In this document: positions 8,307 through 63,869 of the stretch, piece after piece
How positions within the stretch are numbered: position 1 is the first letter of the stretch
Layout of the letters: the number at the start of each line of letters is the position of its first letter
Source: Octopus bimaculoides
Lineage: Eukaryota
Reading direction: 5' to 3'
Length of the DNA: 64,000 nt
Assembly: GCF_001194135.2 (NCBI RefSeq)
Contig: NC_068993.1
Coordinates: forward strand, 13,424,300 to 13,488,299
Notes under the pieces: model-generated
What the model was told of the DNA's origin: nothing
Seen by the model: only the letters and a program-made list of their open reading frames with translations
Database searches by the model: none
Program-made: the position numbers and the translations under genes

Positions 8307-8477
8307 TTCCCAGTGTGCCTGTACCATGTCCGTTTCAAGGTAGTTACTTCTTCCGCTACATGAACGGAAGTGTGAACTGCAGCAAACCGTTTTCGCAGAT
8401 GCGAGAATGTGCAGATAACTCGCGATTTAAATTCCATTTTAGAAAATGTAATGGAAATCCGGAAACAACAGAAAAAG
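8307..8477 (+). CDS. Internal coding exon A (171 nt, phase 1->1) of a Cys-rich DUF7042/DUF7043-like repeat protein: (V)PSVPVPCPFQGSYFFRYMNGSVNCSKPFSQMRECADNSRFKFHFRKCNGNPETTEK
   Basis: Acceptor is ttttttgttttcttattacag and donor is AAG|gtaaca. The frame is open, it carries a CPFxGxY/F..C..P.S....C....R......C pattern, and it splices in frame to 13413. The family assignment is from memory, not a search. Confidence 0.9.
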
Positions 8478-10272
8478 GTAACAACCTGTTATTTGCACAG
8501 AAAAGCAAACGTTCATACATACATCCACTAACACAAAGACACATACACATCACATGCATTCTCTTTATGTAATTCATTTCTTGTTTCTCACTCTACACCC
8601 TCTCCCGACTATATACATGTGTGTGTGAGTGTGTCTGCTGCAATGGATTCAGGCATCGCCAATTTTCGTGTTTTTGCAGACGATACATACATTCTCCCCT
8701 ATCTATCTATACACACACACACACACACACACACNNNNNNNNNNACACACACACACATATATATATATATATATATATATATATATATATATATATGTAC
8801 ATATATATACACACATATATATATGCACACACATACATGTACACGAACACACACTAACACGTGTACACATACACACCAGTACACAACCACACATGTATAA
8901 AATTTGTTTTTGTCTATGTCTGTGTGCATGTGCATATATGCTCCATCAGAATTGCAAACAATCGTTATATGGGATAAAATTTAATCAGAAAAAAGAAAAT
9001 ACACAAAAGCATTAGAAGCCATTGCCTATTCGCTGTGGAACTGAAGAAACCAGCCAGACTATTATCTTTTTCTCTTCTTACTGCTGAACGTGTAAATGTG
9101 AATAAATTTGTAGAAAACCTTTCTATGCGCCATTATTTGGAAACATTCGAAATTTTCAACGGTACCCAAATTAATTAGAAGAGAATCTTTCATACATTTT
9201 CTGGCACTATTATTTTCCTTTTCTACCTCCCGTTTTCCAAGAAGAGGTATACCATTAAGTCAGCAATCACATATACCCTTGTACAAGTCATTAAATCGAC
9301 GAGTTCTATGGCATCATTCGTGCCAACATCGGTATAAAAATTCAGCAGATCTCTTCCTAAGCACATTCAAATGAAAGTTAGCTCACACGTGTGCATGTGT
9401 CTATACATCACTCCCTTACTCTGTGTGTGTGTGTGCATATCTATATCTATATATATATATATATATATATATGCATGTATGCGTGTGTATGGGTATATAT
9501 ATATATATATATATATATATGTATGTATGTATGTATGCGTGTGCATATATATAAATCTGTGTTCGTATGGAGGTAGGTTCTATGTATGTAAGAGTATTGG
9601 TATATATATATCGACGAATGCGTCACGTATGTACATGTGTGTGTGTGTGTATATGCACACAACCACACACATATATATATATACACATATATACACACAC
9701 ACATATACACACATACATATATATATACACACATATATATATATACATATACACACACACGCACATACACACACACACACACATATACATACACACACTC
9801 ACACATACACACACGAAGATTTGTCTTCGTGCATACACCTCCACATTACTCAGCTATACGTTACGGACACATCGATCTACGCAATTTACTCATCGAAGAG
9901 AGACACTAACGTTCTTTTCTTAAATATAAAGTTATTGTAAAAATATAAATAAATAAATAAATAAATACAAACAGCAAAAATTATATGAAAACCAAACTAG
10001 TCGTTTTGGTTTAGTCTTCATGCTATAAATTATTTACATTACTATTCTCAGAATATAGACAATTATTTAATGCTGTTTATTTTTTCAATAAAACCAATTT
10101 TACTTTAGGAATATATACGCTGAGAATTATTTTTAATGAGGAAATATTTTCGTTCGCTCAGAAAACAGCTAATTCGCTACCCAGAAAAAAAAAAAGATGC
10201 TAAACAGTATAAAAATAAATAAAAGAACTATGCACATGTACGCATTTATACAAACAATATATATATATATAG

Positions 10273-10475
10273 TTTTACTTGTGTAAGTCATTTGACTGCG
10301 GCCATGCTGGAGCACCGCGTTTAGTTAAGCAAATTGACCCCAGGACTTATTCTTTGGATGCCTAGTACTTATTCTATCGGTCTCTTTTTGCCGAACCGCT
10401 AAGTTACGGGGACGTAAACGCACCAGCATCGGTTGTCAAGCGATGTTGGGGGGACAAACACAGACACACAAACAT
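10273..10475 (-). mobile_element. SINE family A, 3' half only
   Basis: Contains gtcatttgactgcggccatgctggagcaccgc...gcgatgttggggggacaaac. Confidence 0.85.
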
Positions 10476-11974
10476 ATATATATATATTCCTTTCGTCATT
10501 ATTAAAACTTCCTCGTTCAGGTTAAAATGGTCATATATTTTTTAGAACTAACTTGAGGTTTCCTAGGCTAGTCATAGAAGCCTAGCGGTAAGTACTGCGG
10601 TCGATTTGTCTTACTTAACCGTTCTAGGCGGTGCCCCAGCATGGCTACAGTCCACTATTTACAGCGAGTAAAAGATAAAAGAGATCTTATTGTTCTTAGC
10701 GTCTATATTTATAAGATGAAGACAAAAGCATAAGATATTATAATATCAGTACCAATTTTAAACATCTCAAGAGGAATTATCTGTAATCTGTAACTATTAA
10801 AATACTTCACAGATATATTTGAAGTTGGACAGGATGTTTTATTTCAATTAGCTACGTTGCTGTTATGGAGCTCATACTCGATATTAGAGAATTATATGAG
10901 AATTAATTAAAATATACAACATATGTTAAAGACACCACTTCTGTCATTATTCAATTATGTAAAAATAAATATGATATTGAGGCGATTGTGGCGTTTCTTA
11001 AGCATGAAATAGAATAGCAACAGACAGATATTGAAAAATATATCTTCTAATTCGAGCGATTAATGTGATTACTTTATTCACGTCACAGTTTTTCCCAGCC
11101 ATAACAAATGATTTGTTTGAGTCTGTTCACTTTTAAATGTAGAGGAAACAGATCAATGAACCACAGTGTATTGCTGGTACTATTCTTCATGATCAGCGGG
11201 AAAAAAGCAGGCCACTGAAACACGAACTTAGATCAGAAAGTTAAGAAAAAACTGTTTTGTCCAGCCGTTAGTGTAACCCTATTAGTCATCGCTTCAGTCC
11301 TACTTTGTACTGTATGGGACATTGAAAACCACTCTTTGTATGCATCGATCTTACGCACCTAATACAACACAACCACACGTACACACATTCAGACACACGG
11401 CGAGGACAAAGATACCTCTTATACAATGCAATCATTGAAATAATACACTTGGTATTCGTATGACATGTACACATCATGCAAACATACAAAATCAAGCATA
11501 AGTTACATGCACATGCCATTATCATACGTTAATGCATCTTTTCTACGATAATGATAGTTTCCGGAGAGGTGGCTAAAAAATTAATCATGCGTGAACACGT
11601 GGCGAATTCATTACATTGCCAGAACTCGACGCCTTCATTTTCTAGCAAAGCATTGAAATGAAGGCTTCCAAAGAAGTTATATTCAACGTATATATCAACA
11701 ATGTTTCGTTTAACATTTCCTTGTGTCGGTAGTTGTTAGTGGCTATACGCATCATATAGGATGCATCGAAACTGCTCAATATTTCTTCTGGATCCAAACT
11801 TAGGCGGCTGGAAGCAATTTACATTTCTTATTCGCAATATTTTCCTCACATTTCGGTACCAAAACTAATATTCTCATTTCATGTAAAAACCAGAAAAATT
11901 AGATGATCACAAACTTCATATTTCAAAGCCTAATAATAATGAAAATTTGTTCTACTACATACACCAAGCATGAA

Positions 11975-12165
11975 CATTTCTCAAGGGATTGGGGAGGGGG
12001 CTAGTCGATTTCACCGAGGTTTGTGTCCTGTTGCTATTTATATTATCGACTCCGAAATGAAAGGGAGTGTAGACCTCGGTGGAATTTGAACTCAGAACGT
12101 AAAGACAGACGAAATGCCGCTACTCGTTTTGTTCGCGTTCCTAACGATTCAGCTAGCTAGCCGAC
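11975..12165 (-). mobile_element. SINE family B copy
   Basis: Contains gacctcggtggaatttgaactcagaacgtaaagacagacgaaatgccgcta. Confidence 0.8.
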
Positions 12166-61740: not shown

Positions 61741-62824
61741 TATATAACTGTTTGACACAGCTCTACATAATTTAAAGTTTCTTGGCTGTATAAGAAGTTC
61801 ACCACACCAGATGTTCAGAGACTGTCACCTATATTCTGATGAGGTGGGTATGTCACATGTATGTGTGTGAGTGTATATATATATATATATATATATGTGT
61901 GTGTGTGTACGGAAGAAAGTGTAAGAGAGAGAGAGAGAGATCATTGTTAAGAGCGTATCAAATCATAATTGTGGGTGGTTGTTTGGCGTATCAATAGCGG
62001 CACACACATGCAAACACATCTATCTAAAATTACAACCCGTGCACGCACAAAACTGTAGTTATTAAATGTGATCACCCAACAGGAGGAGTAGCAGAAAAAA
62101 AAATTATATATATATCTCAAAGCGAAACCAGAGAATGTAACAAAGATCATTTAACTCGAACAAGAAAAGTGGAAACTTTAAAGATGGAAAAGAGATGGCG
62201 AAATATCGTAAAACATTTTGATCCCATCAAATAACTATCATTTATTGCGAGTGAATTTTGATGATTTCTGCCTTTTACCAGTATAATTTTAACCCTACTA
62301 CTTGAACCTTAGGGTATGTGATCTACCTGTGTGCTAAAATGATTAAAATCTGTTGGACGGAATGGGAGAAGTTAGAATAATCCCAAACACACAGACAGAC
62401 AGTCACCATTACACATTTATGAAAAAAGATTACTATACTCCTGAAACAGACCGTTGGAGCCCCACTGGCTAATTATCTAAACTGGACTACCTATATTTGT
62501 TCATTGGAAAGTCCAACCTCCATGCTTAAAACTTTATTTATTCACTTTCTCGTACGGAGTTATATTTTTATTCTTTAATGGTTTTAACATCGCTTTTTCT
62601 CTTTTAATTGGATAGTAGGTCAAGATATTTATATATAATTTTATACATCAACATTTTTATACCTCGATTTGATTTTTCTATTATGTTTGTATGTATTTAT
62701 GTATTCATAAATTTTTAATATGTTTGAATATTTAAATGACTGATGCATTGATATATTTTATTAAATGATATACATCGATTTATGGCTGAATATGTTTTTA
62801 TATTAAGTATTGAACCTACTTCAA

Positions 62825-63466
62825 GGATCCTGTTCAAAACGGGGGCACCAGTATTTTCTTAACGAACCACTTTCAAACTTGGGACACTGGTAGAATGTGT
62901 CATATAAAACATCTTTTTCTCTTAGTCTTCTTAACAAAAAAACGTACATCGCAAGTTATTTCATGTTAAAGTTGTCGTATTTCTGTAATTTCAACCAATG
63001 ACTGACGTCCATTCAGTCGATTACATTAAGTGCTGACTACGTAAACAAACGATTCGCAAACGATTCTGGCGGTGATAAAAGTATTATTTTCTTGTCAAAA
63101 AATGGCTGAAGCATATTGGCAGTAGGGTTAGGGTTAGGCAGTATCTAATAAACCTTTCATACAGTTCAGGCAGATGTTAACGAAATAAATACGCGTGAAA
63201 GAAAATGAAAAAAGCAAATGTTGTACGAAATTATAAATGGAGATTAAATACGCTTTACACCGCTTAAACGGCCAAAGGAGTAAGTGTAAACAGCTGAATA
63301 CTTGTCAGTGATTGGTTGAATTTATCGAAATAAATTCGAATACAAAAATTTTTTTCTGTTCTATAACACAAAATAGATAAGTATACGAAGTTTGAAAGTC
63401 TTTCGGTACGAAAAACACTACATAAAACATTAATGAAAACTGGTGCCCCTGTTTTGAACAAGATCC
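62825..63466. mobile_element. Merlin-like non-autonomous DNA transposon (642 bp), 28-bp TIR, perfect 8-bp TSD tacttcaa
   Basis: TIR ggatcctgttcaaaacgggggcaccagt matches actggtgcccctgttttgaacaagatcc at 26/28. The TSD is at 62817-62824 and 63467-63474. The GG...CC ends with an 8-bp TSD fit Merlin/IS1016. Confidence 0.85.
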
Positions 63467-63794
63467 TACTTCAATTCTCCTCTTAAATATTATTCATATC
63501 TTGCGTCTCGGGTTCTCTACCTGACCACTTCATACTGCTGCCTACATAATACAATTTTTTTTTATTATATATACGTATCAATTCACAAACGCAGACACAG
63601 ACTCTCACACACACAAATTAATATATACAAACACTCATCGATATTTGTCTTGGTGCATCCTATTTCCGTACACATGCACCTATGAATGAGTTTACACATA
63701 CGATCGTGTGTGGTTTACAGTACAATAAACAATACCTTAAATATTTAGATTAGAATGTGATTGTAATGCATTTGTCTTCTTTCATTTCTCTCAG

Positions 63795-63869
63795 GTTCAC
63801 CTTACCATAATGACAAAGATGCCTGCAAACACATACAGTTGGTGAAAGCCTCCACGTTGTATTTGTTAC
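63795..63869 (+). CDS. Probable coding exon F of the same gene (75 nt, phase 1->1): (G)SPYHNDKDACKHIQLVKASTLYLL
   Basis: Acceptor is ttcatttctctcag and donor is TAC|gtaagt. Only the phase-1 frame is open throughout. The G.P.....AC pattern fits the end of the repeat begun in exon D. It needs an unseen phase 2->1 exon between D and F. Confidence 0.65.

Follow-up and report, generated by a model that had tools for sequence, protein, structure and literature searches.

The 64,000-nucleotide stretch of Octopus bimaculoides DNA analyzed here (the window) is an internal 64-kb slice of one very long gene, of which coding exons 5, 6, 7, 8 and 10 are visible. The gene is real, conserved and under constraint, and its product belongs to the DUF7042/DUF7043 family of proteins. 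We consider this gene model and family assignment close to certain. Exons are numbered here after the scallop orthologue, which has 14 coding exons, and residues after the 580-residue Octopus sinensis orthologue XP_029644100.1 (P0001). The visible exons, each with AG/GT splice sites and with the E-value of its tblastn match to the O. sinensis protein, are as follows.

8307-8477 (+): coding exon 5, 171 nt, phase 1 to 1, residues 116-173, first half of DUF7042 (CPFQGSY, NGS, NCS); E = 1e-33
13413-13519 (+): coding exon 6, 107 nt, phase 1 to 0, residues 173-208 (CLATW, YRC); E = 3e-19
30930-31038 (+): coding exon 7, 109 nt, phase 0 to 1, residues 209-245 (DASCQG), end of DUF7042; E = 4e-18
42015-42318 (+): coding exon 8, 304 nt, phase 1 to 2, residues 245-346, NDS sequon; E = 9e-61
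63795-63869 (+): coding exon 10, 75 nt, phase 1 to 1, residues ~368-393, end of DUF7043; E = 1e-10

All five exons have AG acceptors and GT donors, and exons 5-8 also show strong polypyrimidine tracts. An earlier note on this DNA had named exons 5-8, and we found all four, with their AG/GT sites, in the places it gave. The fourth is real but had been drawn one base too long: it ends at 42318, and its donor GT occupies 42319-42320. The intron lengths of 4,935, 17,410 and 10,976 bp reported there are exact, the phases (1-1, 1-0, 0-1 and 1-2) are correct, and the spliced frame is open for 230 residues, which make up only about 40% of the protein. The same note had the gene run from 8307 to 63869. 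At the second of these positions ends a fifth exon, 63795-63869, that it did not list, and the gene overruns both ends of the window. Among the motifs it reported, CPFQGSY, CLATW, YRC and DASCQG are present together with the sequons NGS, NCS and NDS, but C.F..W is missing from the window's product and sits instead in the N-terminal domain, outside the window.

The residues encoded in the window (116-345 and 368-392) are identical to the O. sinensis protein at 254 of 255 positions, with one substitution. An exhaustive HMMER search with exon 8 returned the O. sinensis protein (LOC115218431, "uncharacterized protein") as sole cluster representative, with a 99% match to residues 246-345. The spliced product of exons 5-7 matches the Pfam model DUF7042 (PF23069) end to end, over profile positions 2-122 of 123, with 102.5 bits and E = 2e-29 against a gathering cut-off of 27 bits (the same for DUF7043). 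The exon 5 segment matches it even when taken alone (E = 6.6e-13), and on the full O. sinensis protein the domain covers residues 120-243 with 106.9 bits. Exon 8 encodes the first two thirds of a second A-type domain, DUF7043 (PF23070; residues ~256-383), including a cephalopod-specific loop. The octopus DUF7043 domain alone scores just below the cut-off (25.3 bits, E = 2e-5), its counterparts in Haliotis, Solemya and Mizuhopecten reach 34-48 bits, and the whole-protein DUF7043 score of the O. sinensis protein is 50.5 bits. Pfam thus bears out the DUF7042/DUF7043 assignment that the earlier note had proposed.

Microsatellite-derived pseudo-open reading frames (pseudo-ORFs) are abundant in the window, and on that ground the exons might be taken for chance ORFs in AT-rich, repeat-laden DNA. 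This reading is ruled out by homology reaching E = 9e-61 in tblastn, by the Pfam match at E = 2e-29, by intron positions conserved in scallop, and by a G+C content of 42% in the exons versus 34% in the introns. The claim that the window carries no real coding signal besides this gene also held: a Pfam search of 279 other stop-free segments (129 on the plus strand downstream of exon 8 and 150 long ones on both strands) yielded none above threshold. A tblastn search of the window with the spliced peptide found no further repeat copies of it.

The gene had been described as hidden, but it is already annotated in the same species as XP_014776606.1. The 90% cluster of the O. sinensis protein also holds O. 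vulgaris CAI9731548.1 (P0002, 593 residues) and three O. bimaculoides fragments (XP_014776606.1 / LOC106873667, A0A0L8FF24 and UPI000695747D; P0003-P0005), and the records of all three species carry only "uncharacterised" names. XP_014776606.1 comprises 213 residues encoded by this stretch of CM046613.1 (window 8359-42322) and covers most of exons 5-8. It begins at an internal Met of exon 5, reads past the exon-8 donor (42319) into TGG TAA to end in NDSW and a stop, and is missing the 132 N-terminal and 235 C-terminal residues of the full protein. The second fragment (P0004, 77 residues) begins exactly at 63795, the third (P0005) is a 146-residue C-terminal piece, and both are intact. These three fragment models belong to one 14-exon gene; we rejected the alternative of three separate genes. 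The exons for residues 393-580 lie past window base 64000, and those for residues 1-115 were not found in window 1-8306 or in a further 1.6 kb upstream by fuzzy peptide matching or low-stringency tblastn. The gene spans ~597 kb in O. sinensis, ~185 kb in Argonauta (partial) and 86 kb in scallop.

One exon within the window's span was not read, and the interval that must contain it is the following.

42319-63794 (+): 21,476 bp, which must hold two introns and the unread exon 9 (65 nt, phase 2 to 1, residues ~346-367, CVSKYQCVKIELIARSFFKMVI)

Exon 9 is required because a direct join of exon 8 to exon 10 (42318 to 63795) breaks the frame: it produces a frameshift and a stop after five codons. The corresponding segment is found in all eight full-length orthologues, with C346, S348 and C352 invariant. 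As predicted, the exon would be 65 nt long and AG-flanked, and would encode (C)VSKYQCVKIELIARSFFKMVI(G). This peptide is absent from all read letters of the window by both fuzzy peptide matching and low-stringency tblastn, a result that weighs against an intact gene. The interval holds five gaps, totaling 1,451 N (46394-46764, 50102-50111, 51018-51727, 52605-52614 and 56423-56772), and exon 9 probably sits in unassembled sequence in one of them. The unread exon probably also explains why the O. bimaculoides RefSeq model is truncated and split.

The same absence could instead mean that exon 9 is truly deleted and that the O. bimaculoides copy is a broken gene or pseudogene, as skipping the exon brings a frameshift and stop, and the species' own annotation consists of three fragments. 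We consider a pseudogene highly improbable. All five visible exons are undamaged, have perfect splice sites and differ from O. sinensis at one residue in 255, the downstream fragments P0004 and P0005 are intact as well, and the five gaps have the microsatellite flanks typical of unassembled sequence. The exon-9 interval also contains an inverted pair of 390-bp elements, 92% identical and ~13 kb apart (44467-44857 and 57711-58100), which may represent two recent transposon copies or may point to a misassembly at this place.

Support for an intact gene with an unread exon 9 also comes from other species. We rebuilt the 14 coding exons of the scallop orthologue (P0011, 35% identity) from its 86-kb locus (L005), and they reproduce the protein exactly. 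Scallop and octopus exon borders fall at the same alignment positions, to within one residue at split codons, and the intron phases around exons 5-10 are identical in the two (1, 1, 0, 1, 2, 1, 1). The exon lengths compare as follows.

Exon 5: scallop 180 nt, octopus 171 nt
Exon 6: scallop 104 nt, octopus 107 nt
Exon 7: scallop 109 nt, octopus 109 nt
Exon 8: scallop 283 nt, octopus 304 nt
Exon 9: scallop 65 nt (phase 2 to 1), octopus 65 nt (predicted, unread)
Exon 10: scallop 75 nt, octopus 75 nt

Because the scallop and octopus structures agree, exon positions and phases have been kept since the bivalve/cephalopod split. Scallop also has a first intron (L005 2055-59270) that takes up 57 kb of the 86-kb gene, and it may be that the gene has generally kept such a long intron directly behind its signal-peptide exon. 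A second line of support is P0007, a relative at 66% identity and presumably a cephalopod, whose coding sequence is an uninterrupted 1749-nt ORF on contigs of 3.0-3.7 kb from three sequencing runs. We take these contigs as transcript assemblies because the gene itself spans 86-597 kb. One of them (L002) aligns to the window exons with 73-81% nucleotide identity. Among the alignments of this contig, one ends exactly at the donor 13519 and another lies within one base of the exon 5 acceptor (8306 versus 8307). They are evidence from another species for the junctions in the window.

Full-length conservation extends over cephalopods, gastropods, bivalves and a chiton. The eight full-length orthologues (O. 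sinensis, Argonauta, P0007, Haliotis, Gigantopelta, Solemya, Mizuhopecten and Liolophura) have 569-605 residues and 33-80% identity, carry no protein names, and share the same four-domain order, DUF7044-DUF7042-DUF7043-DUF7042/45. Two of these domains lie outside the window and are known from orthologues: DUF7044, at residues 21-102 of the O. sinensis protein (70.2 bits), and a fourth domain at ~398-505 with a weak match to DUF7042 or DUF7045 (21-27 bits). Twenty-five cysteines are invariant across the eight orthologues. The exons read in the window encode ten cysteines, of which eight are invariant, and two more invariant ones (C346 and C352) involve the unread exon 9. The octopus protein is not set apart from the Pfam DUF7042-45 family, except that its second A-type domain carries the lineage-specific loop of ~20 residues. 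The two halves of the protein can be aligned with each other by hhalign (E = 3.6e-6), with exon 9 aligning to the CYQC segment of the first domain. This comparison supports an origin of the protein in which an A-B pair of domains was duplicated internally.

Our protein searches returned molluscs only. A word-indexed protein search with the spliced 230-residue peptide gave no match, and a profile search with the eight orthologues brought in no additional proteins. Literature searches found no paper naming the family, its accessions or LP06548p.

Most topology features of the protein lie outside the window and were read from the orthologues by hydropathy and alignment. Most orthologues, among them the O. 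sinensis protein, are hydrophobic at both ends. They have a hydrophobic N-terminal leader that ends just before the first invariant Cys. At the other end, a hydrophobic stretch closes the protein in seven of eight orthologues, with only one to four residues after it, the last Arg being invariant. Ahead of this stretch lie a polar spacer ~10 residues long and the conserved motif IN.G.S. Signals for attachment of a glycosylphosphatidylinositol (GPI) anchor usually follow this plan: a site of small residues, then a polar spacer, then hydrophobic residues up to the end of the protein. The leader, the 25 invariant cysteines and an all-beta AlphaFold model fit the extracellular, disulfide-stabilized, beta-rich protein that the earlier note had envisaged.

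In the mechanism that we propose, an N-terminal signal peptide would take the protein into the secretory pathway, where it would be N-glycosylated and braced by about twelve disulfides. A GPI anchor, directed by a conserved Asn-x-Gly/Ala-type site, a polar spacer of ~10 residues and a hydrophobic tail of 14-20 residues, would then hold it on the outer face of the plasma membrane. Each of its four domains would form a small calycin-type up-and-down beta-barrel with eight strands. The protein would act as a membrane-tethered binding or recognition module, with its ligand, a small hydrophobic molecule or a protein partner, held in or between the barrels; it would be neither an enzyme nor a structural matrix protein. 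We regard this combination of anchoring and binding as moderately probable.

Two other readings of the C-terminus compete with a GPI anchor. The terminal stretch could be a true transmembrane helix, making a type I protein with a cytosolic tail of ~4 residues, or the protein could be mostly shed and serve as a soluble carrier outside the cell. Residues 557-579 form a single helix in the AlphaFold model. The tail is nonetheless terminal in seven of eight orthologues, with the conserved small-residue motif and polar spacer ahead of it, which is the classic GPI layout. As for shedding, the C-terminus differs in the O. vulgaris model (CAI9731548.1), where it is rich in Asn and Asp and lacks the hydrophobic tail; this model could represent a secreted isoform. 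The deviating C-terminus, which counts against anchoring, stems either from an alternative last exon or from an error of annotation. We consider a transmembrane or mostly shed protein fairly unlikely.

We modeled the protein with AlphaFold2 from the eight-sequence alignment. The whole-protein model is all-beta, with four blocks of 7-8 hairpin-connected strands and a mean predicted local distance difference test (pLDDT) score of 70.9; the cephalopod-specific loop (296-316) and a stalk (519-557) are disordered in it. Modeled alone, the DUF7042 domain forms eight meander strands (pLDDT 71.7). The models suggest that the domains are small up-and-down beta-barrels. In Foldseek, the DUF7042 domain retrieved mostly ligand-binding barrels of 8-10 strands: the Cap15 barrel (target-normalized template-modeling score, or TM-score, of 0.63), designed fluorescence-activating barrels, fatty-acid-binding proteins (FABPs), avidins and lipocalins. 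The whole model retrieved tandem streptavidin and, as its best matches, the four-domain bacterial surface lipoproteins TbpB and LbpB, which bind transferrin and lactoferrin (E = 7e-5 to 2e-4). Of the two-part check that the earlier note had proposed, AlphaFold then Foldseek, the first part gave an all-beta model, but the second gave no single-domain fold match at E <= 0.001.

Several results weigh against a calycin-like binding module on a GPI anchor. The alignment behind the models holds only eight sequences, and their pLDDT is about 71. The single DUF7042 domain has no Foldseek match at E <= 0.001, its matches lying at E 0.02-0.3 with TM-scores of 0.35-0.63. The TbpB/LbpB matches combine probabilities of 0.85-0.92 with TM-scores of 0.12-0.15, a root-mean-square deviation of ~20 Å and 7-9% identity. 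The Pfam models of lipocalins, avidins and FABPs gave no match at E <= 1, and a search of PDB sequences with the orthologue profile likewise found no chain at E <= 1. Resemblance of the predicted fold is the single line of evidence that points to a binding function. The putative GPI anchor, in turn, was judged from the sequences by rule of thumb.

The likeness to calycins (lipocalins, avidins and FABPs) lies in the predicted eight-stranded up-and-down barrel, and the W-x-G-x-W-Y start of domain A1 recalls the lipocalin G-x-W motif. Unlike calycins, the DUF7042 protein would have four tandem barrels of ~95-135 residues, each with 5-7 conserved cysteines, and shows no sequence or profile match to them. 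Lazarillo is a GPI-linked insect lipocalin; it is extracellular and lipid-anchored, as the octopus protein probably is. We do not claim membership of the calycin superfamily, and liken the protein to a tethered calycin by analogy. TbpB and LbpB resemble the protein as proposed here in having four beta domains in two duplicated lobes (handle plus barrel) and a lipid anchor at the cell surface, but they belong to another kingdom and use another anchor chemistry. We read this likeness as an architectural analogy, with no evidence of common descent.

Neuronal recognition molecules, the vertebrate IgLONs for instance, are typically lipid-anchored and encoded by giant genes. The protein might accordingly be a homophilic or heterophilic cell-cell recognition molecule, for example a neuronal one, its barrels serving only as rigid spacers and interaction surfaces and offering no ligand pockets. 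In keeping with this, the gene is very long in each species on record (~597, 185 and 86 kb). Gene length, however, simply tracks genome size, and Pfam finds no Ig, cadherin, FN3 or EGF domain in the protein. We hold this reading to be quite improbable. A broader proposal, which we offer tentatively and think unlikely as it stands, is that DUF7042-45 proteins form an unrecognized class of lipid-anchored receptors for lipophilic or protein ligands, with four tandem calycin-like barrels and giant genes comparable to those of neuronal recognition proteins, in molluscs and, according to Pfam, in other invertebrates.

RefSeq, UniProt and Pfam already list the gene and its family, and their existence is no novelty. 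What is new is modest. It comprises, first, an annotation repair for O. bimaculoides, in which three fragments become one 14-exon gene broken by an unread 65-nt exon. New as well is the deep conservation of exon positions and phases, from bivalves to cephalopods. Finally, a family without a literature gains a first testable picture: a signal peptide, two duplicated pairs of predicted, disulfide-braced beta-barrels and a GPI-like tail. If true, this picture directs experiments to ligand and partner screens at the cell surface.

The window lies on O. bimaculoides CM046613.1 (GCA_001194135.2), with its base 1 at approximately position 13,424,300; its first 52,322 bases are identical to the part of record positions 13,422,659-13,476,621 that they overlap. 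The DNA has a G+C content of 34% and contains many microsatellites, SINE-like (short interspersed nuclear element-like) repeats and 12 N runs. All 12 N runs are intronic or upstream of the first visible exon, the closest to an exon edge being 258 nt away, and none of the five exons needs a reading frame that crosses a gap. Each run is flanked on at least one side by (TA)n, (CA)n, (ATA)n or similar TA/CA-rich sequence, as at 8735-8744, 23924-24351 and 51018-51727. At all these gaps the assembly failed in simple repeats, and little can be read from the lengths given for them. As far as exon order and strand are concerned, the scaffold is sufficiently continuous: both are collinear with the orthologous proteins.

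Two families of dispersed repeats recur in the window. The SINE-like repeat, ~300-450 bp long, has five copies of 78-92% mutual identity.

7601-7935: SINE-like repeat copy
10273-10487: SINE-like repeat copy
22866-23320 (-): SINE-like repeat copy
43657-44032: SINE-like repeat copy
48781-49099 (-): SINE-like repeat copy

Four of these five copies lie in introns of the gene and one just upstream of exon 5, and their pseudo-ORFs (FQFPSTKST..., ...GTEPGT...) recur in the ORF list. A second family of ~150-220 bp and 76-82% identity occurs in both orientations, at 671-882, 5361-5575, 5799-5973, 12035-12249, 21013-21162, 25628-25811, 30554-30753 and 47627-47868.

The remaining features of the window are minor. 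Rfam finds no RNA families in it. ARAGORN called a tRNA-Gln(ttg) of 83 nt at 27683-27765 (+), which we rejected: Rfam gives no tRNA there at gathering or at E <= 1, and ARAGORN probably picked up a decayed SINE head or made a false call. A lone ORF fragment at 37383-37661 (-) resembles a C2H2 zinc finger (zf-C2H2_4, E = 0.002, below cut-off) and was probably left behind by a transposon or by the expansion of zinc fingers in octopus; the ORF beside it at 37707-38111 (+) matches no Pfam model. A local tandem duplication of 140 bp, at 33123-33261 and 33302-33441, with copies that are 98% identical, lies in the intron that separates exons 7 and 8.

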